NCBI GenBank assembly: GCA_030704615.1
Contig: CM060733.1
Span: 16,740,001 to 16,804,000, forward strand
Direction of reading: 5' to 3'
From: Takakia lepidozioides
Taxonomy: Eukaryota; Plantae; Bryophyta
DNA: 64,000 nucleotides
Of the stretch, positions 430 through 39,923 are shown in pieces. Both the position numbers and the translations under genes were made by a program. The stretch's first letter is position 1, and the number at the start of each line of letters is the position of its first letter. A model generated the notes under the pieces. The model did no database searches, was not told the DNA's origin, and saw only the letters and a program-made list of their open reading frames with translations.

Positions 430-2100
430 AACAATCCATATGCAAAAGGCTGGCTTGCGGCTGAGCACTTTCAACTGCAAAACATCACACATTGTTTGAA
501 AGACAAATCGGGCCCAGATTAAGCTTGTGTTGACGACACCTTAATTTGGCACTGCCTCGGAACATGTGGGAAACAGAGAGGAGGGTAAGGCGGGGAGATT
601 AAACTGTCGTCAACGATTTGAAGTGGGACAAGGTCTTCAGTCAAATGGTATTCATATCTGTGCTGGGCAAGAGACATGGGAAACTTCGGACAAACTGGTT
701 GGAGATGTCAACGGCTACCGTTGGTTTGGCAAGATGTGTGCGCTAAAGGTGACCTCTGCCAAGCGTGGGCAAAAAGGTGTTGGCTTCTTTGTCCGAGATT
801 TCTTGTGTGATTATCAACAAGGATTTGCGGTATGAGCACAGTATCTGGCTGAAACTGAAATTGAAGGGCAGCGTGAGTAGGAAGGACCTCTTTGTGGGAT
901 GTGCTTACATGCCCACATAGGGGACCCGTAAAGCTGGACTGTGCTAAGTTCCTTGCCAAGGGTCAGGTGGTCTTATTGGGTGACTTCAATGCCCGGGTTG
1001 GTAAAGGTCTTCACCAGGATGATATCATCGGACCTTTAGGTGAGGACGAGCTGAACTCTAATGGAAGACGGTTTATTAACTGTCTGGAAGAGCTTCAGCT
1101 TTCGACCCTGAACAATAGGTCAAAAGGTGACCCGATGCAGTGGACCCGTGAGAAAGTCCAAACTGGGGAACGATCCATTGTGGATTATATCATAGTGGAC
1201 AAGAATCTGTTTCCCCAGTGTGTCAATGTGTTAATTGATAGAACTGATATTGGTACCTCTGACCACTTTCTGGTTTGGACTGAGATCAAAAGGTGTTTCC
1301 CCAACACCAAGAGATCTGTGAAACGTTCGATCCAGAAGTGGCGCATTGAAAAATTCCGAAATGAAGAGGTCAAGGCTGAGTATGTCCAGGCCTTGCAAGA
1401 GGCTCTGCCCAACTTTGTCCATTCGCTCCAAGACCTTCATTCTCGCGCTGGCAATGCAAGAAATGAAGTCGAAAGTGCGGTGGACTCTTGGGAGAGTTTC
1501 GTCTCTTCTGTGGCTGAAAAGATCATTGGGAGGAAACTAATTATCTGCAGTAGAGCTGTTAATTGGTGGACCAATGAGATCAAACTCAAGATTGCCGAGA
1601 GACGAGCCCTCTATAAAGAGTGCTGCAGAATGAAAGTCAATAATGACCTTTGGGTTAAGTACTACTGTAAGGTCTCAGAAGAAACTATATTGGGAGATGT
1701 TATACCGGGAAATAAACCAGGGTGGTAATGACAAGAAATTCTGGTTGGCCCTTCAACGTCTGTACAAGCCGAAAAATGGTGACTTCAACGGCTGACATTG
1801 TCAACACCTTTGAAACCCACTACAGTACACTTGGCAGAAAGTCTAGTTCTAGCGGGGAGGGGTTTTCTGAAGAATGGAATGACACAGCAGAAAGAACTGT
1901 GTCTATGATTCAAGACAGCCCTGATGAACTGGAGTATATTTCAAAGGGTTATAACGCTCCCATTAGTTCCTCTGAGATTGCGGAAGCAATTGAGCACCTA
2001 AACGGATACAAAGCTGGTGGCCCTGATGGCATTGTCAATGAGCTTATCAGGCATGGTGGTGATCTTACGATAGAGACTCTCTCATCCCATCTTTCAAATA
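430..2100 (+). mobile_element. Degenerate LINE (non-LTR) ORF2 fragment: AP-endonuclease plus pre-RT region, 3'-truncated
   Basis: EEP motifs ICAGQETW, GVGFFV (566-835), LLGDFNARVG, IVDYIIV, TSDHFLV (892-1728); pre-RT motif ISSSEIAEAIEHLNGYKAGGPDGIVNELIRHGG (1722-2141). Frameshifted and ends before the RT core. Confidence 0.85.
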
Positions 2101-2897
2101 ACAAGGCACAGGAATGGCAGCATGCACCGGTGCTCTTCTGAGCGCGCAGGTAGAGGCTATACCCAGGGGCCTGTCTTCCCCTTGCTGTGAACGGGCAGGA
2201 GGCCTCACATCATGGAGCAGAGCAAGGAACCAGGGTGGGGAGCTGACATGGGTATCCACTGTGACACCGCCTGGCTCCAGACCATTTCTCATTATGTCTG
2301 TGATGCCTCCAGCAGAGCCGAACAATGGTATGGACATACAATTCTCTGCAATGGTTTTTTGGGCTGAAAATTGTGTGCGTAGGAGCTAGTCTAGTCATGC
2401 TCCAGATTTTGGTTGCCCAATCCCAACATAATCTACACCCACTTCTGTTGGAGGATTTCACGTTATGATCATGTAATGCTGTAGACGAACGTGGGTGTAA
2501 TTGACATCCTTCTCCTCCTTCCATTAGCTCTTCAACATCTCTTCAAATGTATGAACTTGTGTTATCTCTCCTCTTTCCAGTCCATGTTTGGGAAGAAATT
2601 TTGTGTGTATATACTTGTGAGAGAGAGACGTGGCTTATTTGGGAGTCCCCGCGAGACACCCTGTTTAAACAAGGCAGACTGACGGACTTTTTGCTTCGCG
2701 TATCACGGGGCTCATGCAATTTCAGTGTTCATGTAAGTGCTGGTACAGACATCATGCTAGAAATTCCCAGTGCCATGGCTGTAGCCCAGATGGAACAGAG
2801 ATGTAAGAAGACTCCAATTTCATAAGGAGAAAGAGAGAGAGTCTCGTGGAAGTCCCGCAGTATCATTGTGGCTAAAGATCCATGTTTTTGGATGCAG

Positions 2898-2976
2898 GCC
2901 AAGCAATAAGCATAGGATATCTTTGTCAGGAGTTCATGTCAGATCCTTTGCGATGGTGGGACAACAGGTTGGCAAG
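2898..2976 (+). other. Putative upstream exon encoding the first half of an OSB-type PDF motif (YLCQEFMSDPLRWWDNR)
   Basis: TGCAG acceptor ends at 2897; AG|GTGAGG donor at 2977. The translation resembles the LWxxFFxDPxxWWDNR consensus. It ends in phase 2, whereas the other copies end in phase 0. Confidence 0.65.
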
Positions 2977-3230
2977 GTGAGGCTGTATGAATGGTTAACC
3001 AATCATTTTTAGTTTCTAGGATAGAAAGGACATACTTCTGTGTGCAAAGCTGGTTATATACGTATTTTAGCAGCCTGCACCATGGTTTTAGTTGCTTTGA
3101 TCACTGCAATTAAAATCTATCTGTCACTCTGGCTGGAGTACCTCTAACTTTGGTATCAGTCATTTCTAAGCCTTCCATTTAATTGATGTGGGATATATTT
3201 TGAACCGATACTTGTGTTTGGTGGTTGTAG

Positions 3231-3481
3231 CCTGGTCTATGCGAGGCTGTGGTTGAAGCTATGGCTGCTGAGCCGCCCACTGGTGGTTATCACAGCTTCA
3301 GACATAATTGGAGAAAGGAGTTCCTTGGGAGTTGGTCGAATTGTCCCTGGGTGGAAGCAGAGCCAGCTGCCATGATTCAACATCGAGCACAATCCGGTGA
3401 TGGTTGTTATGTCAATGCACGCCATGGCGTTCCCGTCCAAGAATACATTGGGTATTGTTTAGATGACGATTCAGGTTTAAC
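3231..3481 (+). CDS. Upstream coding exon of the PPR-DYW gene (second half of PDF-like motif, ...SWSNCPWVEAEPAAM...)
   Basis: Open frame from 3231 (ATG at 3261). GTGAGT donor at 3482 and CATGCAG acceptor ending at 3653 give AC+G = Thr, in frame with ATG 3655. The segment is conserved upstream of the paralogue (about 12440-12615). Confidence 0.7.
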
Positions 3482-3654
3482 GTGAGTAGATGTGCTTGGT
3501 ACAGATTATGCTCAATGACCATTTCTCACTAGTTTTATAACTGTAATTATGCGGCAAAGGCCCTCATCAATACATATTTCTTGAAAGCATCTAGGTGTAT
3601 AATACAATTTGCACTTGAGGTTGAAGGTTTGATTTAGAGTTTGAGTCATGCAGG

Positions 3655-6600
3655 ATGGCAGGATTGAATGAGGCGGAGATGTTTCTGGGACAAGAGACTG
3701 GCGGCAGGGGTAGTTCCCTCTCTGGCACTTGTCAGTATGTTAGGACACTATGTAAGGCAGGACGACTGAAAGATGTGCTGCACATTTTGAGCCAACAAGG
3801 CATTCGAGCAGACTGGAATACATATGTCGTTCTCTTGCAGGAATGTATAAACATGAAAAACCTAGCACAAGGGAAGCAGGTGCATGCCCACATTATCCAA
3901 AGTGGATGCAAGCCAAAAGTATATCTGCTCAATACACTTGTCAACATGTATGTCAAGTGCGGTAGCTTGGTGGATGCACGTCAAGTGTTTGACAAAATGC
4001 CTGAACGAGATTTGCTTACATGGACTATGATGATGGCAGGCTATGCCAAGCATGGGCATGCTCAGGATGCCTTCAAAATCTACGAGCAAATGCAATGGGA
4101 AAGGGTGACCCCTGACAGGATCACCTTCATCTGTGGTCTCAAAGCATGTGCCACCCTAGGAGACCTGGAAAAGGGCAAAAGGATCCATGGTGACATCATC
4201 AAAGCTGGAATAAAGTCATATGTAAACCTGGAGAATAGCCTTGTGGACATGTATGCCAAATGCGGGATCATGAAGGATGCGCAGCAAGTGTTTGATAATA
4301 TGGCTAAGCGAGATGTGGTTTCATGGAGTGCCATGATTGCAGGATATGCTCAGCATGGGTGTGGTAGGGAAGCTTTGAAGGTCTACGAGCAAATGCAACA
4401 GGAAGGGATGATGCCAAACAGGGTCACATTCATTTGCGTTCTCAATGCATGTGCTAGCTTAGGAGATTTGGAGAAGGGCAAGCAGGTCCATGCTGACATC
4501 ATCAAAGCTGGAATTATGTCATATATTAATTTGGAGAATACTCTTGTTGACATGTATGCAAAATGCGCAAGCATGAAAGATGCCCAGCAAGTGTTTGATA
4601 ATATGGCTACACGAGATGTGGTCTCGTGGAGTGCATTGATAGCAGGATATGCTCGTCATGGGTTTGGGAGGGAGGCTTTCCAGATGTACAGGCAAATGCA
4701 ACAAGCAGGGGTGAGACCCAACACAGTCACATTTCTTTGTGTTCTCAATGCGTGTTCCAGCCTAGGAGCCCTGGAAAAGGGCAAAGAGGTGCATGCTGAC
4801 ACCATGAAAGCTGGAATTGCGTCCTATATCAATTTGGAGAATAGCCTTATCGACATGTATGCAAAATGCGGCAGCATGAAGGAGGCGCATCAAGTGTTCG
4901 ACAGTATGGCTGAACGAGATGTGGTCTCGTGGAGTTCGTTGATAGCAGGATATGCTCAGCATGGGGATGCTATGGAAGCTTTCAAGATCTATGAGAAAAT
5001 GCAACAGGATGGGGTGACGCCCGACAGGGTCACATTCACTTGTATTCTCAATGCATGCGCCAGCCTCAGAGCTCTGGAAAAAGGGAAACAGGTCCATGAT
5101 GACATCCGCAAATCTAGGATCGTGCCAGATATTATCCTGGAGAATACCCTTGTTGACATGTATGCAAAATGCAGGGGCATGAAGGATGCTCGTCTAGTGT
5201 TTGACAATATGACACAACATGATGTGGTTTCATGGACGACCATGATTGCAGCATATGCTCAGCATGAGTATGGCAGGGAGGCTGTTGAGATGTATGAACA
5301 AATGCAACAGAAAGGGCTAAGGCCCGACAGGGTCACATTCACTTGTGTTCTCAATGCATGTGCCAGCCTAGGAGCCTTGGAGAAGGGCAAAGAGGTCCAT
5401 GCTGACATCATTAAATCTGGAATTGCATGCTACATAAATTTGGAGACTGCGCTTGTGGACATGTATGCGAAATGTGGGAGCATAAAGGATGCGCGTCAAG
5501 CTTTTGACAATATGGCTAAACGAGATATAGTATCATGGAACACCATGATCGCAGGGTATGCTCAACATGGATGTGGCAGGGAGGCTTTCGAGATATATGA
5601 GAGATTGCAGCAAGACAGGATGACTCCTAACAGGGTCACCTTCTCTTGTATGCTCAATGCGTGTGCCAGCCTAGGAGCCCTGGAGAAGGGCAAGCAGGTT
5701 CACGCTGACATCAGCAAAAGTGGAATTGTGTGGGATATCATTTTGGATAACAGCCTTGTTGACATGTATGCCAAATGTGGGAGCATAAGGGATGCGCGTC
5801 AAGTGTTTGACAGTATGGCCCAACGAGACGTGGTTTCATGGAATGCCATGCTCACAGGATATGCAAGGCATGCGTGTGGTGGGGAAGTGTGGGAGGTCTA
5901 TGAGCAAATGCGGCAGGAACAAGTGATGCCTGACAAGGTCACCTTCATTTGCCTTCTCAATGCATGTGCCAGCCTAGGAACCCTGGAAAACGGCAAAGAG
6001 ACCCATGCCGAAATCATCAAATCTGGAATTAAGTCGGTTCCATACTTAGACACTGCCCTTGTCGACATGTATGCCAAATGCGGGAGCATACAGGATGCAC
6101 GGAAAGTGTTCGACGGTATGGTTAAACAAGATGTGGTCTCATGGAACGCCATGATAGCAGGTTATGCTCAACATGGGTTTGGTAGGGAGGCTTTGGAGAT
6201 TTATGAGGAAATGCAACGGGAAGGGGTGATGCCTGACAGGGTCACGCTTACTTGTGCTCTCAATGCGTGTTCCAGCCTTGGAGCCCTGGAAAAGGGCAAG
6301 CAGGTCCATGCTGAAATCAGCAAAAATGGGATCATGCCAGATATGATTTTGGATAACAGTCTTGTTGACATGTATGCCAAATGCGGGAGCATAAAGGATG
6401 CACATCAAGTGTTTGACACTCTGGGTCAACGAGATGTCGTCTCATGGAACGCCATGATCGCGGGCTACGCTTGTCAGGGGTTTGGTAGGGAGGCCCTCCT
6501 AGTATTTGAACAAATGCAAAAGGAAGGGTTGAAGCCGGATACTATCACCTTTATATCTCTTCTATCGGCATGTAGCCATGGGGGCCTAGTGGAAGAAGGC

Positions 6601-7359
6601 TGTCACTACTTTGATTCCATGAGTGGAGATCATGGCCTCAATCCTTCTGTGGAGCATTTTGGCTGCATTGTGGACCTTCTTGGCCGCGCAGGCCGATTGG
6701 TGGAAGCAGGGGACTTCATTAACAAAATGCCAATTGAACCAGATGTTCGGGTGTGGGGTACTTTGCTTGGTGCCTGCAGAGTCCATGGAGATGTGGAGCT
6801 AGCAGAATGTGTAGCAAAAATCGTACTCCAGAAGGATCCACAGGATGCTGCATCTTATGTGCTCCTGTCAAACATCTATGCTGCGGCAGGGAGGTGGGAT
6901 GATAAAGCAAAGGTGAGAAAAATGATGGAAGACAGAGGTGTCAGCAAGGAGCCAGGGCACAGCTGCATCGAGGTCAACAACCTTGTGCATACGTTTGTTG
7001 CGGAAGATAAATGGCATCCTCAACTTGAGGAAATCCATGCTGAGCTGAATAGATTGTCTGAGCAGATGAAGGGGGCAGGGTACGTACCTGACACACGCTT
7101 TGTATTACACGATTTGGAAAAGGACCAAAAGGAATTTTCTCTGTGCCACCACAGTGAAAGATTGGCTATTGCTTTTGGGCTCATCAGCACACCCCATGGG
7201 GCTCCTATCCGCATCATCAAGAACCTTCGGGTATGTGGTGACTGCCACACCGCCACCAAGTTTATCGCGAAGATTGTGGGTCGAGCAGTTGTGGTTCGGG
7301 ATGCCAATCGCTTTCACCACTTCCAGGATGGGGTCTGTTCCTGTGGAGATTACTGGTGA
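3655..7359 (+). CDS. PLS-class pentatricopeptide repeat protein with E1/E2 and DYW cytidine-deaminase domains (organellar C-to-U editing factor)
   Basis: 1234-aa uninterrupted ORF with 101-aa P-L-S triplets (nine MY(A/V)KC S-motifs), then P2-L2-S2, E1/E2, PG box ([10 protein letters not shown]), HSERLA, CGDCH and terminal CSCGDYW. Confidence 0.98.
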
Positions 7360-11092: not shown

Positions 11093-12214
11093 ATCGATAT
11101 CCTTAGCCAGCTTCACTCTCAACGTTCTTTCTATCCTAGTAGCTAAAAATGATTGGTCACAACAGAAAACCTCACCTTACCAGACCACGGTGAAGGATAT
11201 GCCGAACTCCTGCAAAAGCCACGCTTACTGCTTGGCCTAAATGAAACTACATAGAACATCGTCATTATCAGCTCCTAATTGTCGCGTGTTTTCTGCTGTG
11301 GAATGAACTTGGTGTGTCTCTTTCCAACAACAAAAAACAAAAGCGCCGGGTGAAGGGTCGCGACCAAAAGGCCAAGGACATGTTTCTTGGGTCCAAAACC
11401 AAGGAAGTTTTGTCCAAGATATTCGGACAGCGTGCATCTCACATTTTGGGATTGTCTTGCGGTCATCGGATTCATTACATCCTTCACCCATTTGGTCCTT
11501 TCTCTCAAGCGAGTACAACGAAGCTGATTTGTGGATTGTGGGTGACAGCTTGCAAACTTGGATTGCAGCGCACTCCGCTGCTATCCTGAGAGCTGCCCTG
11601 TTCTCTCCTGTGCAGTGAATGGGCGACAGCCTAATTATGCAGCAGATTATCGGGCCAGCTATGGATGGAGCTGAAATTAGTATCCAGCTTGGGAATGCCG
11701 GAGCCTAGACCGGTGCGAGTGATGGCTACACACCTTTATACGGAAGAAAGATACAAACACACGATTCTTTGTTTACTTTTCGCAAGATAAATTGGTCGAA
11801 GAGGTGCAAGCAGGATTGAAATTGACAACCAGGCCGTTCAGCTCCTCCCTCAATATCGGCTGTAGCATCTGAAATTTCTCTCTACTCTCCATATTTTAAA
11901 GGAGATAGAGACAGGTTATAGCGCCTCTGGGATTTCCTGATTTTAATATTCGACTCGTTTTTCTTGGCCCGGGGTGAAGAGTTATGTCATGGCTCGCAGC
12001 GGAAAATCCTGCTGCTGGTTTCAAGGTGTGGAAGCATTTTGAGCTCGCTTCTCAATTTTTAGGACCCGTCATCACAGATAGACAGGTGGTGTTAAGATAG
12101 CTGCTGAGAATGTACGTTCAAGTACTGGCACTCCCAGTCCTGGATGGAGACTGGGGCAATCAGAAGGTGGAAAAATTCTCATGTCCTTATAATTCTTGCA
12201 CAAAAAGCAAAGAA

Positions 12215-12265
12215 TGGCTCTTCTTCTCATAACCTTCACAGTGGTGGGACAACAGCTTTCATAAG
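12215..12265 (+). pseudogene. PDF-motif exon relic upstream of the second PPR gene (WLFFS*PSQWWDNSFHK)
   Basis: WWDN motif followed by AAG|GTGTGG donor; in-frame TAA at 12230; downstream segment SWLNPPWVKADLAAM at about 12450-12494. Confidence 0.65.
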
Positions 12266-12787
12266 GTGTGGCTTTGTTCATTGTATGTAAAAGATTTTGT
12301 CTGAGGATTGTTTGTTGATTGCAGTTGGCATGATGTTCTTTTGTAAACTGGATTGCATCTCTAGATGAGATTATTGCTCTTCATCAGGAAAAAGCAGCAA
12401 AAGGGGTTCATAATGCTGCCATCAGTTGGATTTTCAATTGGATTTTGAGAGTTGGTTAAACCCTCCTTGGGTGAAAGCAGACCTAGCTGCCATGATACAT
12501 GGTCAAGCACACAATCTGGCAATGGTTTTTATGTTAATGTACGCCATGGCATTGGAGCCCAAGAATACATCGGGTATTCTCCTGACGAGGATTCAAATGT
12601 CTACCACGAGTAGATAGAATTGTTACAGTTCACTCTCAAGAGTATGTGACTCAGTAGTCTTTGTACCCCTCCATGTATCTAGCAGGGGGCCTGTCCTAGC
12701 GAAGAGATGTTTCCTTGAAGAATCTTGTTGTATGTCATCTAAGTTTGAAATTGGAGGTCTGTAATTAAGAGTTTTGAGTCATGCAGG

Positions 12788-15530
12788 ATGGCAGGGTTGA
12801 ATAATGCAGAGTTGTCTGTTGGACATGATAATGGCATCAGCGTTAGTACCCCAACCCTCACCGCAGATGTTCAAAGACCACCAAGTGCCCAAGTCAATAA
12901 GGATTTTTCTGGCGCTTGTGAGTATGTGAGGATACTATGTAAGGCAGGACGTCTGAACGCTGACCATTTTGAACCAAGGAGGTGTTCAAGCAGACTCGAC
13001 TGTCTATGTCTGTCTCTTGCAGGAATGTATCAACACAAAAAACCTAGCAAAGAGCAAGCAGGTGCATGCCCACATCATTCGAAGTGGATGCAAGCCACAA
13101 ACATTGTACTCAACACCCTTCTCAATATGTATGCCAAGTGCGGTAGCATTGTGGACGCACGCCAAGTGTTTGACAAAATGTCTGAACGAGATAAGTTTAC
13201 CTGGACTATGATGATGGCAGGCTGTGCCAAGCATGGGCACGGCGAGGACGCTGTCAAACTGTATGAGCAAATGGAACAGGAAGGGGTGACCCCGGATAAG
13301 GTGGCATTCATCTGTGTTCTCAATGCGTGTGCTTCCCTGCAAGCCCTGGAAAAGGGCAAAAAGATCCATGCTGATATCATCAAAGCGGGAATCCCATCAT
13401 ACATTAATTTGGAGAATAGCCTTGTGAACATGTATGCCAAATGCGGGGTCAAGGATGCACAACAAGTGTTCGACAATATGGCCAAACAAGATGTGGTTTC
13501 ATGGAGTGCCATGATCACAGGATACGTTCAGCATGGGTGTGCTAGAGAAGCTCTTAAAACATATGATCAAATGCAGCAGGAGGGAGTGACGCCAAACAGG
13601 GTTACATTCATGTCCGTTCTGAATGCATGTGCCAGCCTAGGAGCCCTAGATAAGGGCAAACAGGTCCATGCTGACATCATCAAAACTGGGACTGTATCAT
13701 ATATCAACTTGGAGAATTCACTAGTTGACATGTACGCAAAATGTAGGAGCCTTAAAGATGCACAGCAAGTGTTTGACAGCATGGCTAAACGAGATGCGGT
13801 TTCATGGAGTGCATTGATAGCAGGATATGCTCATCACGGGCTTGGTAGGGAGGCTGTAGATATCTATGAGGAAATGCAACAGGAGGGAGTCGTGCCTAAC
13901 ATGGTTGCATTTATTTGCGCTATCAATGCATGCTCGAGCCTAGGAGCCCTGGAAAGGGGCAAAGAGGTCCATGCTGATACAATCAGAGCTGGAATTGTGT
14001 CCTCTATTAATTTGGAGAATACCCTTGTTGACATGTACGCAAAATGTGGGAGCATGAAGGAGGCGCTTCAAGTGTTTGACAATATAGAAAAACGAGATGT
14101 GGTCTCATGGAGTGCTCTGATAGCAGGATATGCTCAGCACCAGCGTGGTGCGGAGGCTTTCAATATGTATGAGCGAATGCAACAGGATGGAGTGCTGCCC
14201 GATAGAGTCACATTCACTTGTCTCCTCAAAGCGTGTGCTAGCCTTGGAACCCTGGAAAAATGCAAGCAGGTCCATGCTGACATCAGAATGTCTGGGATTG
14301 TGGTAGATATCATTCTGGGAAATACCCTTCTTGATACGTATGCCAAATGCGGGAGCGTGAAGGATTCCCGTGAAGTGTTCGACAACATGGCTCAAAAAGA
14401 TGTCGTCTCCTGGACGACCATGATTGCAGGATATGCTCACCACAAGTGTGGCCAGGAAGCTTTGGAGGTCTATGAGAAAATGCGGCAGGAAGGGGTGTCA
14501 CCTGACAAGGTTACGTTCACTTGCGTTCTTAATGCTTGTATCATCTTAGAAGACCTGGAAAAGGGCAAAGAGGTCCATGCTGACGTCATTAAATCTGGAA
14601 TGGCACCAGGTATCATCCTGGATAATAGCCTTGTTGACATGTATGCCAAATGTGGGAGCATAAAAAATGCACGTCAAGTGTTTGACGATATGGTTCAACG
14701 AGATGTGTGCTCATGGAACGCCATGATCTGGCTATGCGAAACATGATTGTGCCAGGGAGGCTTTGGAGATCTATGAGAAAATGCTAGAGGAAGAAGTGAT
14801 TCCTGACCTGGTCACATTCACTTGTGTTCTGAATGCATGTGCCAGCCTAGGAGCCCTGGAGAAGGGCAGGTGGGTCCATGGTGAGATCAGCAAAACTGGA
14901 ATTATGCCAGATATCATTCTGGATAACAGCCTAGTTGACATGTATGCCAAATGTGGGAGCACAGAGGATGCACGTAAAGTGTTTAACAATATGACTAATC
15001 GAGATGTGGTCTCATGGAATGCCATGATTGCAGGATATGCTCACCATGGGTTTGGTAGGGAGGCCCTTGTATTATTTGAACAAATGCAACATGAAGGCTT
15101 GAAGCCAGATACTGTCACATTTATCTCTCTTCTCTCGGTATGTAGCCATGTGGGCTTAGTGGAAGAAGGCTGTCACTACTTTGATTCCATGAGTGGAGAT
15201 CATGGCCTCACTCCTACAGTGGAGCATTTTGGTTGTATTGTGGACGTTCTCCGCCGTGCAGGACAATTGACTGAGGCACGGGACTTTATTCACAGAATGC
15301 CAGTTGAACAAGATGCTCGGGTGTGGAGATCCTTGCTTGGTGCTTGCAAAACGCATGGCAATGTGGAGCTAGCAGAACATGATGCAAAATTCGTTGTCAA
15401 GGGGGGCCAATAGCACAGTGCAGCTTAGGTGCTGCTCTCAAACACTTATACTGCGGCAGGGAGGCAGAACAGAAAAGCAAGTGTGAGAAAAATGATGGAG
15501 GACAGGGGTGTCAGAAAGGACATCAGCCAT
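12788..15530 (+). pseudogene. Tandem paralogue of the PLS-PPR gene; frameshifted, truncated after E2, no DYW
   Basis: Same GAGTCATGCAG|GATGGCAGG start context as copy 1. The first L motif lies in an alternative frame (12969-13105), there is a frameshift near 14728 and a stop at 15411-15413. The E2 remnant VLLSNTYTAAGR...[12 protein letters not shown] ends where the PG box should start. Confidence 0.9.
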
Positions 15531-18355: not shown

Positions 18356-21066
18356 ATACCTCTCGTGAATGCAGAGCGATACCCTGGGTAGAGTCTTGCG
18401 ATATACTAGCACACATTTTAGGGAAAGGGTGACGGCTACGTAGAGGGAACCTTTGGGCGGCAGATTGCAGTTAGGGTGAGAGATTTGTTAGATTTGGGGT
18501 GGTTGTGTAATTGCAGTTGTGATTACACCAAGGACAGTGGTGGCAATGGACAAATCGTGGCTGGGTATGCCTATGTATATATTGGAAACCCTTGATGTCA
18601 CATGGAATTCAGCCTATCTGTCCTGAGAATGAACTTCATACCCGGGTTGATATCTGCCTGGTATTGCACAATTCCAAACCCTACTATTGATACCACATAC
18701 TGGTTCTTGCAAAAAGCAATACTTATACCAGTATTGCTGGGGCACTTATTCATCATTACCTCTATTTCTATTAATTTATTATGTCATGGTTTGCATTTTT
18801 TTTTGGGGCCCTGCGTGTGCAGAGTCCCCTAGGTACTAGTAAGTAATAAGTAGTAAGAATAGCACATCAGCATTAGCACATCCCCCTCATGCGGCCCATA
18901 CTCGTAGACAAACAAGGGGTTACTGAAGCTCAGGAAATCCAGTTTTGGTATGGAATTCTGGACAAGGAGCTCAAGAGAAGGGTGCGAGATGCAACCCTGT
19001 TACAAGCAGCCCAACCCACATTAGCAGATGTGTTTCTGCTGGCTGAGCGGATTGAGCTCAACATGGTGGAGGAGCGAGTTGTCACCATTGGATTTGGCAA
19101 GGACATGCCTGCACGAGGCGCAGCTGCCAGCCCACAGGCACAAGGTACTGCCCAGCAGCGTGGTCAGGGGGGCAAGGTTTCCCAACCCAAGTTCCATGGA
19201 GTTTACAGGGGACCTCAGGTGCAGAGGCCCGTGGCATCTTTTGCAGGCCAACAACAACCAGGGGTGGTATGTTGGACATGTGGAGGACCCCATGTCAAGA
19301 AAGATTGCCCAAAGAATGGCAGAAGGCCGGCACAAGCACAGCCTGCACAGTTGCAGTGTGGGCATTGTGGCAAGTATGGACATGGAGATGCCCAGTGTTA
19401 TGACTTGCACCCTGAGTTGCGCCCAGGCCAGTTCCAAGGGAACAATGGTGGCCGGGGGCGAGGTGGACCAGCCCAGAGAGCACGAGGTGATCGGGCACGA
19501 GGTGCAGGCCAAGGGCAAGCTCAACATGGCCAAGGACGCGGATGTCAGGGTGTTGACCAAAGCATGGCCAACCGGCTTCAGCAGCTAGAGCAGAGGCTCG
19601 CTGCCATGGCTACAGCTCAGGCGGTACCGGCTCCCAGGCGGGATGGTCCACCTCCTGTTCCTGAGGGAGGAGATATGGGAGGCATGGGATTCATATACGG
19701 AGCAGCACTACCACTAGAGCAGGTGGAGTCTGCTGCAGCCGTGACTCGAGGAGCAGCACGAGTTCCTGAGCCACGAGGTGCAGAGGTGGAGTTGGATCCA
19801 CAACGTGGGGAGGCAAGCCGTCAAGCGAGGCTGCCTCAGTCATTCACCTTGGCGGAGACAGTGTCAACGCCATCCATGGCACCTAGTTCTCGCCCGACTG
19901 TTACCGAGGCGGAGGTTTCTATGCCATTGGGGAGAGCTACACGTGCAACACTGATACCTGCTGCCAAGGCTAGTGCAGCCGGTGTGTTGTTGGGGGCAGC
20001 CACCTCTGTGTGTCAAGCCCCACTGTTCTCGGCAACCATGATTGCGACGCCGGGGGTAAGACCAGCTGCAGTGTTCAGACTAGCAGCAACACTCTATGAG
20101 AGTGGGGAGGTCACGTCATCTTCTGCGGAGTTAGTGGAAGGTATAGTGGCAGAGGGATCCTCGGATTTGAGGGTCAAGACTGCCATGGCTGCGCCATGGC
20201 AAGCTGCAGCTGCCAAGTTGACGGAGCTGCCAACTAGGCCAGCCTTTGAGCACGCCATGGTGACACCTGGAGTTGTCTTGTTAGACAACCAGGGAGACAT
20301 TTTCACTTTGAGTGGACCGGCAGGCAAGAAGTACTGGCCACTGCGGGTCTTGTTGGACTCGGGAGCTCAGCCACTGATGTTGGGCAGAGCTGCTATTGCA
20401 GGTTTGGGCCTCATGGAGGCGGATATGGAGCCTTGTCCTTTCCAGATACAGACATCTCTGGGAGGATCAGAGCAGGCTCGGGGCATGACACGGCGTGAGT
20501 TGGCCATTGGACTACAAGCAGATCATCCTGTAGATGGCTGAGTGATGCGAGCCAAGGCCATTGTGACAGACGCGGTCTCTTACGATGTCCTTGTGGGTGG
20601 GGCAGTGTTATATCCCATGGGCTTCACCCTGGACTTTTGGGAGGAGTCAGCATCCTACAGGCCTGGATGGCAGTCAGGGGATGGTCGTCGTGCACAGCTC
20701 CCTGTGACATTCATTGGGGGTATTGCGGTTGCCCAACGGGGCAAGATGCCAACACTAGCCGCCTTTACAGCTGCAGTTAGTTGGCCTAGAGAGTTGCTGG
20801 AGGGCAATGCCCATGCAGAGGATGTGTCACCTCCAGCAGAGCAGGATGACATGCATGGTATGGCGGAGTTGCCTGCCATGGTTGCTCACACTCCATTGTG
20901 GGGTACGAGCAAGGATTTGCAGCAGGTTGCGGATCGACGGGTGCAACAAGCCTAGGTAGAGGCTTTTGTACCGTTAGGAGAGGAGGAGAGTGCGGGTATT
21001 GCACCAGGACCACCTCAGTTGTCACCATTGGATACCACACCTATTGTGTGGCAGTATATGGATGAA

Positions 21067-28799: not shown

Positions 28800-29070
28800 C
28801 GGAGCCCAATTCGGCGCCGTTATTGGTTGCACTCCCCAGCCTTCAGCCGGATATTTGGTTTCCGGACAGCGCCGTTATTGGCTGCACTCTGGTGGCTTCA
28901 GCCGAGTATTTGGTTTCCGGGGCCCAATTTCGGCGCCGTTATTGGCTGCACTCCGGAGGCTTCAGCCGGGTATTTGGTTGGCGGAGCCCAATTTCGGCAC
29001 CGTTATTGGTTTCACTCCCGAGCCTTCAGCCGGCTATTTCTTTTCCTGTGCCCAATTACGGCGCCGTTAT
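28800..29070. repeat. Minisatellite, about 4.5 units of 55-64 bp
   Basis: Repeated CCCAATT(T)CGGCGCCGTTATTGG(C/T)TGCACTCC...CTTCAGCCGG..ATTTGGTT; a further partial unit at about 29185. Confidence 0.85.
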
Positions 29071-29579
29071 ACCCAACCATCCTGCACTTCTGCAACAGTA
29101 CTATCCACGGTTATAGGTCGCCATTACGTTTTCGGAGTCTGCAAACCCGGATCCTAATTCCGCTTGTGTCCCTTCCTCTGGGGTAATTTCGGTGCCGTTA
29201 TTGCCCAGAATTCAGTTTTTCTATGACCTGGCCTGGCGGTCCATGAGCTTGGGCTCCAAGTCATGAGCGGACACTGGTACTTATGAGCGGAGTGCTTCCA
29301 GCATGAGCGCGGAAATCTTCGAAAACCTTCTCTTCTTATACTATTTTCGATTATTTTATAGTTTTGGGCCCGAAAAAAATCTGTTGAAATTCCAAGTGTG
29401 TTACTTGGCGGCTCATGGGTGAGCCATGCCCGCTCATGAGCTCATGAGCTCATGAGCTCATGGAATAGCAACCCCCCTTGCTGCTCTGGGGATTGCCTAA
29501 GGGTCAAGGTCTCGTGCAAGTAAGCTGATAAGCAGTTCTGATCCTCATAATGCAAGACTTCAGTGAGTTCCACGGAATA

Positions 29580-30371
29580 GACCATCTACCCATGGAGGTT
29601 TCTTGTAGTTATTGATCCACAGGGAATCATAGGTAATCTTGTGCTTGAAATTTGGCCCTCTAGGATGAATCTGGACCCACACTCTATCCCTGCTCCTTCA
29701 GCTATCCATGCCCCTGCATAAATCATGCATTCATCCTTGCCTTGCTGCTAGGAGCTAACAATGACAGCCTAGATTTGTTCAGCTAGGAAACACCCAACTC
29801 AGCTTATCACACTAGTTCCTATGCTCAATTGCGCCTGCTACTCTCTGAAATGTAGCAGGCATTCACCTTTTTGCCTCGGTTGTCCCATCATTGACCGGAG
29901 GCAGAAAAGTATTCATTCCACAGCTTTTCCTCATGTCTGTTACTTGTTTTTTGATACTTTCCTGTTGTCACATAGCAGTATCATGTCAAAGTCACTCCAA
30001 ACTAGATTCACTCAACCAGCTAACTTGTAGAATTCAACATGGAAATTTTGGGCCGATTCTGATAAGAGGGAAAAACAGGGTGAAATGTGCTGAAGAAGAT
30101 GCTTTCATTAACAATGTCTGATTTTATCAATTGTGCCGTTGCTGTCAGTTGACCATCTACCCATGCAGGTTTCTTGTAGCTGCATACTTAATGCGGAGCT
30201 TGAAGTCTGGCCCTCTTGAGTGAATCTGCACCCACACTCTATCCCTGCTCCTTCAGCTATCCATGACTCGCACGAATCATGCATACAACCTTGCCTTGTT
30301 GCTAGCAGTTGACGATGACAGCCTAGACTTGTTCTAGGAAGCACCCAACTCAACTTATCACACTAGTTCCT
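29580..30371. repeat. Direct duplication, 29580-29821 versus 30151-30371
   Basis: Both copies contain GACCATCTACCCATG(G/C)AGGTTTCTTGTAG, CCCACACTCTATCCCTGCTCCTTCAGCTATCCATG and CTTATCACACTAGTTCCTA. Confidence 0.85.
29867..29950 (-). pseudogene. PDF-motif exon relic (EEKLWNEYFSASGQ*WDNRGKK)
   Basis: Inverted copy of the exon at 31143-31236 with TGG changed to TGA; AAG|GTGAAT donor retained. Confidence 0.7.
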
Positions 30372-31142
30372 AGTGCCTTTGGAGTCCCCTCACAAAGTAT
30401 ACCGCTCGTTTTCTCAAGAGCATACCAATTCTTTGCCTGCCAGAATGCTACGCTATCCTTTTCACTCTGAAACAGAATCCACTTGTCATGTAGGCTTGAA
30501 GTAGCCCTGCCTGAGTTACCTTCACACCCTGTGTGGGCGACAACCTGAGATTACCATGATTGATTATTTTCAAGATCTTCAGGAACACTCAATCAGCTGA
30601 CATGATTGTTGTTAGTTGTGTCAAGTCGCAATCTCAAGCTTAGAATGGAACCTCAAGGCTGGCTTGGTAGAGCAGGGACTATTCCCCTTTGGGTGTTTAT
30701 TACATGTATTCTTACCTCTAGGCTTGCAATTTTGTGCAACAGGCCTGATGGGCTGGAGAAGGCTTATGTAAGGCTGACAACTAATTATGATGCGTTGGAT
30801 ATGGCAAACAAAGTGTGTATCATCTAGAAGGGTTCTTGTTGTTTGGAACTGGGTTGGTTTGAGAGGTGTTTTGTAAGTTTTGTAGTTTTGCAAAGTGCTT
30901 TTCATGAGTTTCATCCATAAACGTGTGTTAAAATGTCTGGCTTTAGAACAGTTATGTTTTGATAGCTTTCATAGTTATGTGCTAATGACTGCTAATGAAG
31001 GCACATTCTTCACACACCTTGTTTTCCCCTCGTATCAGAATCGTCCCTAATTATTCATGTCTGAATTCTACAAGTTAGCTGGTTGAGTGAAGCTTTGATA
31101 GTTTGGAGTGACTTCGACATGATTCTGTCAATGTGACAACAG

Positions 31143-31236
31143 GAAAGTATCAGAAACAGGTAACACAGACGAGGAGAAGTTGTGGATTGAATACTTTTCT
31201 GACCCCAATCAATGGTGGGACAATCGAGGCAAGAAG
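31143..31236 (+). other. PDF-motif exon (KVSETGNTDEEKLWIEYFSDPNQWWDNRGKK)
   Basis: Best match in the window to the OSB PDF consensus; AAG|GTGAAT donor at 31237; 31062-31281 is an inverted repeat of 29821-30037. Confidence 0.75.
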
Positions 31237-31969
31237 GTGAATGTTTGTTGGATTATAGAGAGTAGCAGATGCAATTGAACAAGACTGCTTCGTTTTGCAT
31301 AATCAAATGGTTTCAACTATTCAAGGAGATATACCACAAACATATTTAATCTCCATGAATTGTGTTTTATGATGCCTATTAACAAGCTTTGTTTGTGGAG
31401 AAAGAAACTACTTTGTTTGTGATTCTTAGCATGAACTTGTTGTTTTATTTAGAGTTTAATTCTAGTGAAGTTGCTTTGAGTAATAACATGGGACCATAGT
31501 GTGTCTGTTTTAGAAGTGTGACTTGCATGACTGGGCTAATTACTGGGTTTTGCTGATATGATTAGAAGATACAAAGCTTCATTGCTAAAATATGGTCTCG
31601 TCTTCTTTTGGTGGTTCTGTGCTGGCGCTATCTACATTGGGGTAGATTTCTGCAAGCAGCTTTGTGGGGTTTCAATCATACGTAGGTAAAATGTCTAGAA
31701 ATGGGGCATGTCACCACATGTAGATGTTTTACTGCTGGACTTGGATTCAAGGCATGTTTCCTGCATTTCAACTACTTATTCTGAACTTTGGCATTATTAG
31801 TGGCTAGTGTGGTCCACTTACATTCAACTTTCTATCATACATGCCCTCTTAAAGTACTATAAATGTTTTCTCAATAAGGTGGGAACAGCTACTGAAATAG
31901 AGGGCATATTTATGTGCGCATGAGTAGGAAATGTCTTGTTTTCATGCAACCCTGAACCACTGTGCACCA

Positions 31970-34601: not shown

Positions 34602-35331
34602 TGTCGCGGCCCTTTGCCTTGAGGGCAAGGGGGTCGGGACACATGAGGGGTTGCCCCTGTGGTGGGGGCAGCGGCAGCGATAGGTATGGGGGGCTGAAGC
34701 ACCCTTGAGTGCCCAAGGCACCCAATGAGGCGGAGGCGCTCACTAGGTGGAGCCCCGCACACCGGGTTGCGGTGGGGGTGGCTCCACAAGCGGTGGGGGT
34801 AGCTTAGCGGAACTTAGTGGGGGTGGCATAGGACTCACCATGGGGGCGGAGACCTCGTGGTGGGAGTCGTGGGGAGTCTTGGGACTCATCACGGTCCATA
34901 GGGGCCGTAGTGAGTGGGCCAAGACTCACCGCGACTCATCACCGGGAGTCGAGGGTTTTCGTGGTGTTCGCCATAAAATGGCATGGCTGGTTGTGAAACC
35001 CCCGCGGACAGCTACAGAAGTATATATATAAGGGGAGTAGTGACCCCGAGAACGGTGCAAGCCCGTTGGTGACCAAAAACTAGTGAGTAAGCGAACGAGC
35101 CGGAAAGCGACCAAAGAGACTGCCATCTACCGGACTGCCATCTACCAAAGGGAATTCTCCTAGTCCCAAATAGGTGGAGGGTTTAGTGGGAAGCGAAGGG
35201 GGACCGTTATGTCCCGGTGAGCAGCCGAAGCTCCAAGTTGGCCCGGGCGGCCAGGTTGGGAGTCAGGTGCGCGCATTCAAAGCGAGTAACTATGACTTCA
35301 AGGGGAGCTTATCGAAGTGAGGTGCGCGACA
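34602..35331 (+). repeat. 5' LTR (730 bp)
   Basis: TGTCGCGGCC...GGTGCGCGACA; near-identical to 40827-41550; TATATATAA at about 35023. Confidence 0.95.
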
Positions 35332-35333
35332 CT

Positions 35334-35345
35334 TGGTATCAGAGC
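35334..35345 (+). promoter_or_regulatory. Primer-binding site for tRNA-iMet
   Basis: TGGTATCAGAGC, 2 nt after the 5' LTR. Confidence 0.95.
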
Positions 35346-38300
35346 TTAGAGTTCAGTACGCGATCGTCCTTGGGATTGGCCTCATCATGGGGTCGGGCAA
35401 GCCAAAGCGAAAGCGGAACGGCCCAAAAGATGATGATCCTGGTGAGCCCGATGGGGGCGACGTGTCACCGAAGCGGCCGTTTGAGGAAGCGACGCAGGTT
35501 TCTGAAAGCGAGGCCGCTCAAGAGCGGGAGGAATCCGAGGAGTCGGAGCCCGAGGAATCCGTGAGAGCTCCGACCGACCAACAGATGCCTCCCATGCCGG
35601 CAGCCTTTTGGGAAGGGTTGTTGGCGCAGTTTGGCGGGACGTTGAAAGACGTGTTGAAGGCGGCTAATGCCACTTCCACTAAGGCAAAGTTTAAGGTGAA
35701 GCCTAAGGAACCCGGCACCTTCGAGGGCGTCCGAAATCGGAAGGCACTCAACACCTGGCTCCTGGAGCTAGAGCAGTACTTCCGGGCCAAGTTGAATGAC
35801 GAGGCTCGGTGGAAGTGGCTCCCACCTATTTGAGGGGCTATGCTCAACAATGGTCGCAGAAATGCCTTCACGACCAGGTCCAAGCCCGGAAACCTTGGAC
35901 TGGAGTGGGTTCAAGGAATTGATGAAGAGACAGTTTGTGCCCCTCAACGCGTCTGGCTTGCCGGGACAAGATGAGGAATTTGAAGCAAACAGATGACATT
36001 CGGGGGTATGTCCAGGCTTTCAATGTGCTGTTGCTCGAAGTCGCGGACATGGCAGAACCAGAAATGGTCTTCAACTTTGTGGCGGGACTGGCCCCATGGG
36101 CCAGGCGGAAGTTGGAGGAGAAGCCACCCAAGACTTTGAACGAGGCAATTGAGAGGGCTGAATGTTTCTCGGATGTCCCTAGGGGTGAGAGACAAGGCCG
36201 TACGGAGCTGAACCACAAGAAGACCCCGGCGGGAAGGTGACTCCTCCCGACCGGAAAAGAAGTGGGATAGGCCACGCGACGACAATGGCACGTGGAAATC
36301 GAAGGGATGGCCTTCACACGTCAAGGCGGCACCCGGTGCTTCGAAAGAAGAAGCGGGTGGAGCGGCTTATGGCGGACAAAGGCGACCTTTGATGGAGTGT
36401 GTTTCAATTGCGGGGAGCCCGGGCACATGGCCAAGAAGTGCACAAAACCTCGACAATTGAACATGACTCGGGCAACCACGGAGCTGTCGGAAGATACCAT
36501 CAGTCGCTTGGTGGAAGCGGTGGTCGCCAAGACTTGCAAGGTAGGCAACTATTCTTGTGAGTTGTATCAGGAAACTGGCGCCCTGCGTAAAGGGAGTCAG
36601 TTATTGTTCGTGGATGGGATAATATCCGGAACTTACGTGTCGTTGTTGGTGGACACAGGAGCGTCGCACTCCTTCATGACGCCGGCGGCGGCGCGAAAGT
36701 TGGGACTCTCGACAAGTGACGTGGGGGCCTCTATTGAGATGCGTTCTGCCAAAAGATAACCACAGTTGGCGACAAGGTTGGCGTTTGATGTTCCTCTTCA
36801 ACTGGGAGTTGGGAGGGACGTGAGAACTTCACCATCTCGAGATCAATGGAGTGGATCTCATTTTGGGGATGACCTTTTTGAGCAAATCCGGAGCGGTCAT
36901 AGATGGCCGCAAGAGAGTAGTCACGTGCCATGTGGGAATGGTGGCGAGGTTTTACGAGTGTCGGAAACGCCCAAATCCGTGGGAGGGCGAATAAACCTTC
37001 TGTCAGCAAAGGAGTGGGCCGTGGAGGAGGCACACGAGCCCAATTTTTGCTTTACATTAGAGAAGTGAAAGGAGAAGGCGATGGGGAGCCGAGCCCAGAT
37101 TGGATCAAGGGGATTTTGGAGAATACCAGGATGTGATGCCGGAGGATTTACCAAGCGGCTTGCCACCGCGAAGAGGAGTTGACCACAAGATTGAGGTGAT
37201 ACCGGGATCGGAACCGCCTGCCAAGGCGCCCTACCGGTTGAGCCACAGAGAGTTGGTCGAGCTGAAGACTCAGCTCAAGGATCTAATGTCAAAGGGGTAC
37301 ATCCGGCCGAGTAAGTCACCTTACGGAGCCCCGGTGCTATTTGCAGACAAGAAGGATGGGACGCTGCGGATGTGTGTCGATTACAGGGCTCTGAATAAGG
37401 TGACTATCAAAAACCGGTACCCTTTGCCAAGGATCGACGACCTCTTCGATCGGTTGGCAGGAGCGAAGTATTTCAGCCGGATCGACTTGCGCTCCGGCTA
37501 TCATCAAATTCGGGTGGCGGAAGGAGATGAGGAGAAGACCGTGCAGGACAAGGTATGGTTCATATGAGTTCTTGGTGATGCCTTTTGGGCTCACCAATGC
37601 ACCAGCGACATTTAGCACGCTAATGAACAGCCTTTTCCAGGAGTGGTTGGATGACTTTGTGATCGTGTACATCGACGACATCTTGGTGTACTCGAAAACA
37701 AAGGAATAACACCTGGAGCACCTAAAAGGGTGTTCCAAAAATTGCGAGAAGGGAAGCTGTATGCCAAAGCTTCAAAGTGCGAATTCGGGGTCACAAAAGT
37801 GGAGTTCTGGGGCATGTGATTACACAGGGGGATCAAAATGGATGACAGAAAGGTGAGGGCGATCTTGGACTGGGAGCCTCCGACTTCGGTCCGGGAGTGC
37901 GATCCTTCCTAGGACTCGCCTCCTATTACCGGAAGTATGTGAGAAATTTCGCCAAGATCGCGGGGCCGTTGTCGGACCTTCTGTGTAAATCCAAAGTCTG
38001 GGAATGGAACACATTTTGTGGCCAAGCTTTGCTGAATTGAAGCAGCGGATGGCGGAAGCTCCAGTCTTGAAAATCCCGGAGTTCGATCGTCCATTTGAGA
38101 TTCATACAGATGCGTCGGACTTCGCGATTGGGGGTGTACTTATGCAAGATGGACGTCCAGTGGCTTACGAAAGTAAGAAACTGAATGAAGTGGAGCGACG
38201 GTGGCCGACGCACGAAAAAGATGAAGGCGGTGGTGCATTGCCTCAAGCTTTGGCGCCACTATGTTGGTTCCAACCCAGTGAAGGTGTTCACGGACAATGT

Positions 38301-39737
38301 CACGGTGAAGTATTTTTGCCACGCAGCCCAAGTTGTCCCCAAAACAACTTAGGTGGCAAGATACTTTGGCGGTGTTCGACGTGGATATCCAGTACAAACC
38401 GGGACGAGACAATGGTGGCCGATGCTTTAAGTAGAAAGCAGCAGCTCTTGTTGGTGTACAAGGGCGAGACGGCGCTCCAAAGGAAGATCCGGAAGGCTTG
38501 CCGGAAGGATGAGCTGGCAAAGTCCGCGATGCAGGACTTGAGGATGGGGGTAAATCGCAGTTCCACTTGCAAAATGGACTGCTCCGGTATAAGCAAAAAC
38601 GTCTCTACGTGCCGAGGGAGGGATCAGAGATAGCCTCTTGAGAGAATGCCATGATAGCCCGCTTGCGGGCCACGGCGGAGCCAAGCGCACTGCGGCACTC
38701 TTGAAGAAAGAGTATTTCTGGCCCAAACTGAGGGAGGAGGCAGAGGAGTATGTCAAGACATGCACCACATGCCAACAAAACCGGAGCGAGTACAAAAAGC
38801 AAGCGGGGCTGTTACAACCCTTGCCAATTCCAGAGGGGACTTGGGAAAGCGTCTCGATGGATTTCATGACTGCTATGCCGCTGTCAAAAGGATTCGATGC
38901 AATCATGGTGGTGGTGGATAGGTTCAGTAAAATGGGCCATTTCATCCCCACCAAGGAGACGGCAACGGCGCAGGAGACAGGGCGACTTTACTTCGCCCAC
39001 GTCTTAAAGCATCATGGAGTCCCGAAGGATATTGTCTCGGACCGCGATCCAAAGTTTACGAGTAAATTTTGGAGGGCACTTTGGAAGAAGATGGGGACGA
39101 GGCTGAAGATGAGCACGGCCTTCCGACCTACGACCGACGGCCAAACAGAAAGGGTGAATTCCGTAGTGAAGCAGATCTTGCGGAATTACGTGTCGGCAGA
39201 CCAATCAGACTGGGTGGAACACTTAGACGCGGCAGAGTTCTGTTATAATAACACAGAACACTCCGCAACGGGAGTTTCCCCTTTCGTATTGGTCTATGGA
39301 AAAGCACCTCTGGTGCCGACAAGTTGGGCCGCCCAGGACGTTGAGGAACCGGCAGTAGCGGCGGTACTGGAAGAACGCGAGCGTTTGTTGAAGCTCGCAA
39401 AGTACAATATTGCCAAAGCTAGGAAACGGTATGAAAGGCAGGCGAATCGGAAGCGGAGGGAAGTGAAGTTTGAGGCAGGCACAGAGGTCTGGTTGAACAT
39501 CAAGAATTTCCGACTACCTCCGGAAGTGAGTCCGAAGTTCGTACCTCCGTATGCGGGACCCTTTCGCATTCGGAAGGTTATGAATGAGGATGTGTATGAA
39601 TTGGAGCTGCCGGCAAACAGTAAGGTGCACCCAGTATTCCATGTATCCCTTTTGAAGCCTTACTTCAAAGATGAAGCGCGTCCGAATCGGCATCAAGTGT
39701 TGCGTCCACCACTATGCTGTTGGATCATGAAAATGAA

Positions 39738-39923
39738 TCTGAGTACGAGGTGGAGGCAATACTTAAGTCGAGGAGGTTCAGGAACCGAGAAACGGAGTAT
39801 CTCGTCAAATGGAAGGGCTATCATCATGTGGAGGCATCTTGGGTGCGTGCCTCAGAAATGGGAAACGCATCCGAGGCGGTTGCAGCTTTCGAAGGGCGAC
39901 CTCAAAAGCGGAAGAAGCGTTGA
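39738..39923 (+). other. Integrase chromodomain
   Basis: EYEVEAILKSRRFRNRETEYLVKWKGYHHVEASWVRASEM, with the aromatic residues present. Confidence 0.93.

Follow-up and report, generated by a model that had tools for sequence, protein, structure and literature searches.

A PPR-DYW gene of the moss Takakia lepidozioides with a probably relict leader of OSB-type PDF modules

How does a motif that serves single-stranded DNA (ssDNA) binding in the OSB proteins of plants come to stand in front of a PPR-DYW editing factor? The question is raised by a gene at 2114-7359 (+) in a 64,000-nucleotide (nt) stretch of the moss Takakia lepidozioides (assembly GCA_030704615.1, contig CM060733.1, positions 16,740,001 to 16,804,000), the whole of which we call the window and number from its first letter. 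This gene, here copy A, has a large exon encoding a PPR-E-DYW protein, preceded by short exons in which an earlier inspection of the letters and their open reading frames (the sequence-only reading) had recognized an OSB-type PDF motif; a damaged paralogue, copy B, lies downstream in tandem. Our answer is that the large exon is intact while the PDF leader of copy A is probably a relic. Copy A would belong to a large land-plant family of PLS-class PPR-(E)-DYW genes whose 5' exons encode OSB-type PDF modules, each interrupted after WWDNRxxK by a phase-0 intron. In relatives with intact modules, these would be translated together with the PPR array and kept by selection, whereas in copy A exon 1 has lost one base and exon 2 both the P-D-F-K-H-K core and the L-W pair, with a cut long interspersed nuclear element (LINE) directly upstream.

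The reading frame and leader of copy A

The open reading frame (ORF) of copy A (Table 1) runs through a PPR array into a complete deaminase domain. In Pfam, the array matches PPR_2 (9.3e-166) and PPR (7.8e-154) in addition to PPR_1 and PPR_3, and the C-terminal part matches E_motif (4.9e-19), Eplus (0.0012) and DYW_deaminase (2.3e-43), the last over profile positions 1-93 of 93. The E motif spans roughly 6784-6972 and the DYW domain 7078-7356, and the zinc-ligand motifs HSE and CGDCH as well as the terminal DYW are legible in the translation. ATG 3655, the ORF's own start, lies immediately 3' of a splice acceptor in strong context, and a 23-nt block around acceptor and ATG is identical between copies A and B, with flanks that are about 70% alike. 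When the ORF is compared to copy B, the synonymous divergence (dS) is 0.60 and the ratio of nonsynonymous to synonymous divergence (dN/dS) is 0.30.

We searched the leader exons one by one and worked out their phases by arithmetic. The putative first coding exon (exon 0, 2114-2327) is in phase with the PDF frame of exon 1; there, frame 2897 translates as GQAISIGYLCQEFMSDPLRWWDNRLAR followed by a stop, with an acceptor AG at 2896-2897 and a donor AAG/GTGAGG at 2976/2977. In exon 2, frame 3231 is open for 84 codons, which include GYHSFRHNWRKEFLGSWSNCPWVEAEPAAM and an in-frame ATG at 3261. Both peptides read as the sequence-only reading had quoted them, with splice signals in place, and the join that it had drawn from 3481 to 3654 holds as well: removal of intron 2 (3481/3654) gives AC+G followed by ATG 3655, which sets exon 2 in frame with the PPR ORF. 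The proposed introns of copy A have an AT content of 56-63%, compared to 42-53% in the exons.

Exon 1 does not join exon 2 in the same way. The two are out of phase by 1 nt, as had been suspected, because one nt is lost in exon 1: the spacing from TGGTGG to the donor is 23 nt in copy A versus 24 nt in copy B, in a PDF exon at 31.2 kb of the window and in seven of eight units from relatives (the eighth has 30), and a further copy at 29.9 kb, where the motif reads TGATGG, has 24 nt too. The read-through frame stops at 3375. Exon 2 itself reads HSFRHN and LGSW where 84 units of relatives have P-D-F-x-H-K and L-W, and about 17 extra codons lie between its acceptor and HSFRHN. The frame break and these replacements bear out the earlier caution that the PDFKHK core is degenerate and that the module may be a relic in this copy. 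Since exon 0 passes in phase into exon 1, we conclude that the ancestral gene was composed of a presequence exon, the first half of the PDF unit, the second half with a linker, and the PPR-DYW exon, in this order.

Table 1. Features of copy A, of copy B and of other PDF-related sequence, by position in the window (profile scores in bits)
Feature	Position	Strand	Basis
Putative first coding exon (exon 0); ATG 2114, 71 codons + 1 nt, donor ATG/GTAT at 2327/2328	2114-2327	+	contig X1 record 1
Exon 1, first half of PDF unit (LCQEFMSDPLRWWDNRLA)	2898-2976	+	translation, profile match
Intron 1, after WWDNRxxK; GT 2977, AG 3229-3230	2977-3230	+	splice signals, AT 62% vs 50-53% in flanking exons
Exon 2, degenerate second half of PDF unit (HSFRHN...LGSWSNCPWVEAEPAAM) and linker	3231-3481	+	translation, profile match
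Candidate intron 2; GTGAGT at 3482, AG 3652-3653	3482-3653	+	splice signals, AT 63%
Intact PLS-class PPR-E-E+-DYW ORF, 1234 codons	3655-7359	+	ORF translation, Pfam
Profile match, copy A exon 1	2921-2977	+	17.3 bits, profile positions 3-21
Profile match, copy A exon 2	3294-3374	+	0.9 bits, profile positions 28-56
Profile match, copy B first half	12221-12265	+	9.7 bits
Profile match, copy B second half	12444-12494	+	10.1 bits
Profile match, orphan piece	31174-31242	+	24.9 bits
Profile match, orphan piece	29858-29929	-	13.7 bits
Profile match, orphan piece	29584-29691	-	24.3 bits
Copy B leader; first-half piece FFS*PSQWWDNSFHK with in-frame stop (12221-12265), second half SWLNPPWVKADLAAM (12444-12494)	12221-12494	+	translation, profile
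Copy B PPR pseudogene	12788-15530	+	tblastn chain of copy A on B
Inverted fragment like copy A exon 1 and start of intron 1, WWDN codons deleted	11124-11238	-	blastn, 69% over 136 nt
Orphan intact first-half PDF exon (RKVSETGNTDEEKLWIEYFSDPNQWWDNRGKK followed by gtgaat), no PPR nearby	31141-31236	+	profile
Decayed PDF array; second half ~30160-30224, first half 29867-29962 (TGA for W), second half 29563-29676	29563-30224	-	profile
Cut LINE fragment, endonuclease domain and start of reverse transcriptase (context, outside the gene)	892-2141	+	Pfam, ORFs

The PDF unit in related genes and its fold

An intact PDF-PPR fusion was sought in related genes and found. Residues 1-110 of the PPR ORF, used in a word search, led to KAJ7553580.1 of the clubmoss Diphasiastrum complanatum (locus O6H91_06G104000), the N-terminus of which reads LWQEFFSDPSQWWDNKLIKKSPKYPDFKHKSTHEGLWIENWLNPSWVEAKIATM and continues into the PPR array. 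A search with this N-terminus in turn returned more than 80 D. complanatum and 2 Sphagnum gene models, filed as hypothetical proteins, all of which are PPR proteins and many of which carry a DYW domain. Each of 86 such proteins has one to four PDF units ahead of the PPR array, and 28 of them end in DYW. The PDF-PLS-(E)-DYW architecture that had been proposed from the Takakia locus thus exists.

Gene structure was examined at four of these loci, L001 in Sphagnum troendelagicum and L002-L004 in D. complanatum. Every PDF unit at the four loci, as well as every copy in the window, has an intron directly after WWDNRxxK, and at L001-L004 a continued frame translates the donor GT as V. The intron position of the two-exon PDF unit is invariant from moss to lycophyte, and the family makes a clear case of modular exon gain. 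D. complanatum has an additional intron that separates the large PPR exon from the second-half PDF exon, as proposed for copy A; on an identical position of these two introns, the alignment is too weak to say. Over 28 unit pairs from the four loci, the ratio of nonsynonymous to synonymous differences per site (pN/pS) is 0.25-0.46 (pooled 0.34, with synonymous sites near saturation), and among paralogous proteins the PDF unit is 76% identical versus 65-73% for the PPR array. Because pN/pS is low and conservation of the unit matches that of the PPR array, the relatives' PDF units are, to judge by their substitutions, translated and under purifying selection. Seven positions (P28, D29, F30, H32, K33, L39 and W40) are near-invariant in the 84 aligned units, being invariant or conserved in at least 90%.

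The genes at L003 and L004 each have three PDF units of three distinct types. The unit of the same rank in the other gene is nearer (pS 0.28-0.37) than the neighbours within the same gene (pS 0.63-0.77), and the three-unit array therefore predates the gene duplications.

From 155 units of the 86 PPR proteins (D. complanatum and Sphagnum), we built a PDF profile of 57 positions, which was run against the six-frame translation of the window (128,000 translated residues). All seven matches fall on predicted pieces, in the right order and orientation (Table 1), and they include the two pieces that had been claimed for the paralogue (copy B, 12221-12265 and 12444-12494). The reversed window and 100 locally shuffled windows, which served as controls, gave a maximum of 1.0 bit and one match of at least 0.9. 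Against this profile of PPR-borne units, the peptide of exon 1, the first half of a unit, scores well above the controls, whereas the score of exon 2 lies just under the control maximum. Even so, a chance origin of this weakest match is unlikely, because the controls are weak and because its place, orientation and profile coordinates fit the second half of the unit. Pfam finds no family in any of the leader peptides or in the relatives' intact PDF units, and a word search with the exon-2 peptide gave no match. In a phmmer search against 1.84 billion representatives, the same peptide drew only repetitive bacterial proteins with many weak stretches, none of them PPR or SSB proteins, which we rejected as spurious.

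The modelled fold points to the OSB proteins. An AlphaFold2 model of one PDF unit (m20aeddc5c68f, P0113:1-61; 84-sequence alignment) has a predicted local distance difference test score of 90.3 and consists of a helix, three short strands and a helix, in this order. Its best fold match in the ESM Atlas, with a template modelling (TM) score of 0.89 and a root-mean-square deviation of 1.1 over all 61 residues, is to a streptophyte cluster annotated as 'Single-stranded DNA-binding protein family protein' (representative of 328 residues, Pfam SSB in 98% of members), with three PPR and DYW clusters of 57-127 members in the ranks directly below. The PDF signature of OSB proteins reads W..FF.DP..WWDNR...PDFKHK...LW...P.WV. 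These proteins combine an SSB-like domain with one to three 50-residue PDF motifs, marked by conserved P, D and F, that are responsible for ssDNA binding, and preferential binding to ssDNA is reported for Arabidopsis OSB1/2 (PMC4166229, PMC6963530). The relatives' PDF unit would thus correspond to the PDF motif of OSB proteins, with a fold match as expected; the link draws on the fold match together with the consensus. Profile matches, the shared intron position and the fold match (TM 0.89) together favour the original proposal that the Takakia pieces descend from an OSB-type PDF module.

Among solved structures, a sequence search of the PDB with the PDF unit gave no significant match (best E 1.7), and Foldseek and a wide VIA-align search of the PDB found no solved relative of the fold (best Z 2.6, in VIA-align); two feature-based searches of the Atlas gave no usable match. 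Below the plant clusters, the Atlas rows hold two clusters of hypothetical proteins from phages (Uroviricota; TM 0.63-0.68) and a Rad52_Rad22 cluster (TM 0.44), which may hint at where the PDF fold came from or at how it binds nucleic acid.

Splicing, constraint and the state of copy A

What do transcripts and substitutions say of copy A itself? In two public runs, record 1 of contig X1 (1125 nt) joins 2106-2306, 2899-2969 and 3229-3669, and exon ends at 2327 and 2976 agree with its 98 unassigned letters (junctions 2327/2898 and 2976/3231). This record represents a close paralogue that is about 93% alike over 3229-3669. It keeps 3482-3653 ungapped, with G>A at 3482, and it is the sole contig to span 3481/3654; the splice 3481/3654 was not seen in the reads. 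Exons 0, 1 and 2 are therefore spliced together in the close paralogue, unless the record is a semi-processed retrocopy. The idea that transcripts include the leader exons would thereby hold for exons 0-2 of the paralogue, in which intron 2 is retained.

The homology, the exon layout, the frame break, the loss of core residues and the integrity of the deaminase domain point to a gene with an intact large exon and a probably relict leader. The leader exons of copy A would still be transcribed and spliced as in the close paralogue, acting as an untranslated or partly translated leader, and the protein would start at ATG 3655 or ATG 3261, without a working PDF module. The change in exon 2 relative to the contig X1 paralogue looks neutral, in that only one of the seven listed substitutions falls on a third codon position, indels of -3, +20 and -1 occur, and exon 2 has diverged at least as much as the adjacent intron.

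Several observations weigh against this reading. The contigs of the two runs are of guessed kind ('RNA?'), and the spliced contig X1 could be a semi-processed retrocopy rather than RNA. For the leader exons of copy A, the two runs gave no locus-specific read evidence. By our estimate, the probability that exon 2 would by chance remain open over 84 codons and keep the frame of the PPR ORF is about 2%. Relative to copy B, its 3' half is under mild constraint, with a pN/pS of 0.22/0.36, or about 0.6, over only 50 codons, so that part of exon 2 may still be coding. Lastly, the N-terminus from ATG 3655 is acidic and, by our reading of the translation rather than by a predictor, unlike an organelle presequence, which argues against a working protein from that start.

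The chances that the PPR-DYW part of copy A is still used are about even. Continued use from ATG 3655 or 3261 is favoured by an ORF that has stayed open for 3.7 kb despite a decayed leader, by the dN/dS of 0.30 and by the identical 23-nt block. On the other side, neither start has a presequence-like N-terminus (again on our own reading), the LINE stands in place of the native upstream region, and the main ORF would follow a long upstream ORF that begins at ATG 2114. Much the same evidence bears on the strongest alternative, in which the whole of copy A is a dead gene, with an ORF that is intact only because function was lost recently, as in the broken copy B. The eroded leader, the replacement of the native upstream region by the LINE, the lack of a plausible presequence in frame with the ORF and a tandem neighbour that is a clear pseudogene all suit this alternative, which we consider a serious one, if appreciably short of an even chance. 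It has to contend with the fact that 3.7 kb without a stop or frame change would be short-lived if unselected, yet the leader has decayed well beyond that; with the low dN/dS relative to copy B; and with contigs in two runs that match parts of the ORF and of the 3' flank at 0-3 mismatches.

Exon 2 could alternatively be partly coding: with intron 2 spliced and translation starting at ATG 3261, copy A would encode a 1308-aa PPR-DYW protein with a 74-residue extension from the second PDF half, which would now serve as a linker or targeting segment rather than as a PDF module. The consensus donor GTGAGT and acceptor AG that join in frame, the 84 open codons, the QEYIGY and YVNxRHG stretches that copies A and B have retained at dS 0.6 (pN/pS about 0.6), and the intron between PDF and PPR exons in relatives speak for this possibility. 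We nevertheless find it unlikely, given that the sole spanning contig retains 3482-3653, that the comparison to the close paralogue shows frame-changing indels and no excess of third-position changes, and that the extension is acidic. Conservation between A and B around the acceptor and ATG 3655 fits a start at 3655 equally well.

It is far less probable that exons 1 and 2 are translated with the PPR-DYW ORF to give a working ssDNA-binding PDF-PLS-DYW protein, as the sequence-only reading had allowed. Such an architecture is real and selected in relatives, and exon 0 passes in phase into exon 1 as does exon 2 into the PPR ORF, but the 1-nt loss puts exons 1 and 2 out of phase, the frame stops at 3375, and most of the near-invariant residues (P28, D29, F30, H32, K33, L39 and W40) are absent, so that the sequence of copy A contradicts a working module. 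Finally, the chance that the PDF resemblance is a random match in non-coding DNA is negligible: short pieces, an exon 2 at 0.9 bits and an empty Pfam result would allow it, but seven of seven profile matches fall on predicted pieces, 101 control windows yield one match of at least 0.9 bits, and copy A and the relatives have the intron position in common.

PDF pieces elsewhere in the window and known systems

By tblastn, PPR sequence is confined in the window to 3655-7356 and 12788-15530. The body of copy B (ORFs 12788-14746 and 14763-15413) has one frame change, two stops and about 200 repeat codons fewer, and it is without the E+/DYW end. An inverted fragment resembling exon 1 of copy A lies about 1 kb upstream of the copy B leader (Table 1). 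Further PDF pieces lie at 29563-31281, one of which (the second half at 29563-29676 on the minus strand) reads PRGPNFKHKITYDSLWINNYKKPPWV and then a stop. These orphan pieces form a 555-nt direct repeat together with an inverted repeat, whose arms span 29822-30082 and 31015-31281, with 29822-29949 and 31154-31281 as inverted arms inside these. The region may be what is left of another PDF gene, or it may have been carried along by a foldback or Pack-type transposon. At the DNA level, the two-exon PDF unit has evidently undergone duplication and shuffling, to which the orphan exons bear witness.

Upstream of copy A, the LINE fragment carries Exo_endo_phos_2 on ORF 892-1728 (Pfam) and a GGPDGI motif in ORF 1722-2141. 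It ends about 9 nt before ATG 2114, and the match of contig X1 to the window stops at 2106. LINEs are not usually truncated at their 3' side, and this 3'-cut fragment suggests that the PPR gene block was placed into the LINE.

Adjoining the orphan PDF exons is a tandem repeat at 28814-29070 (four copies, 55-64 nt from start to start, reference copy of 74 nt beginning GCGCCGTTATTGG), which may be a transposon subterminal repeat. Parts of Ty3-type retroelements occupy 35300-39978 (+) and 57178-59040 (-), with integrase domains at 38638-39978 and reverse transcriptase and RNase H at 57178-59040 (Pfam); from ORF translations alone, 35300-37700 looks like gag, protease and reverse transcriptase. 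ORF 18889-20541 has no Pfam match.

We found no paper that joins the PDF motif or OSB with PPR or DYW proteins. Both PPR-DYW editing factors and OSB PDF motifs are well documented; it is their combination that is seemingly unpublished. How PPR editing factors find their targets within nucleoid-associated transcription is poorly understood, and a domain of the ssDNA-binding type that is fused to, and selected in, dozens of clubmoss and peat-moss editing factors would offer a direct way in. As a speculation to which we give little weight, the PDF modules might provide an entire class of PPR-DYW factors in seed-free plants with a second, sequence-independent grip, either on RNA or on ssDNA (of nucleoids or transcription bubbles, as the sequence-only reading had inferred, or of R-loops), the latter of which would make for co-transcriptional editing; even copy A might still make a protein with a PDF-derived tail from exon 2. 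Copy A represents the decay end of this family history. Its PDF leader is eroded while the PPR-DYW body stays open, and the PDF module therefore appears dispensable for at least some members.

When compared to OSB genes, copy A differs in its lack of an SSB-like OB (oligonucleotide-binding) fold, for which Pfam gave no match in the ORF or leader peptides. Because of this lack, copy A is not an OSB but an eroded member of the PDF-PPR family. A separate OSB gene upstream of the PPR ORF was likewise considered and rejected: an OB-fold domain is absent, the exons are laid out as in PDF-PPR genes, and a contig runs from exon 2 into the beginning of the PPR ORF. Arabidopsis OSB1-4 would have the module of about 50 residues in common with PDF-PPR genes, but there it lies C-terminal to the OB fold, whereas in PDF-PPR genes it lies N-terminal to the PPR array.

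The closest likeness is to the gene models of D. complanatum (KAJ7553580.1; P0064 at CM055101.1) and Sphagnum (P0119 and P0120), which have the exon layout of copy A and often E/DYW domains, and in which the tail of the unit (SWxNPxWVxAxxAxM...QSGDG) resembles exon 2 of copy A. Their PDF units are intact, in frame and, by all appearances, selected, whereas the unit of copy A is frame-broken and has lost its core. The copy A protein is only about 50% identical to P0018 over the N-terminal PPR region, with no close orthologue among the sampled models. With the canonical PLS-class PPR-DYW editing factors of land plants, copy A has in common the PLS repeats, the E/E+ motifs and a DYW domain with HxE and CxxC. 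These canonical factors are mostly intronless and have only a presequence ahead of the repeats, whereas PDF-PPR genes have a multi-exon 5' part that encodes PDF modules.

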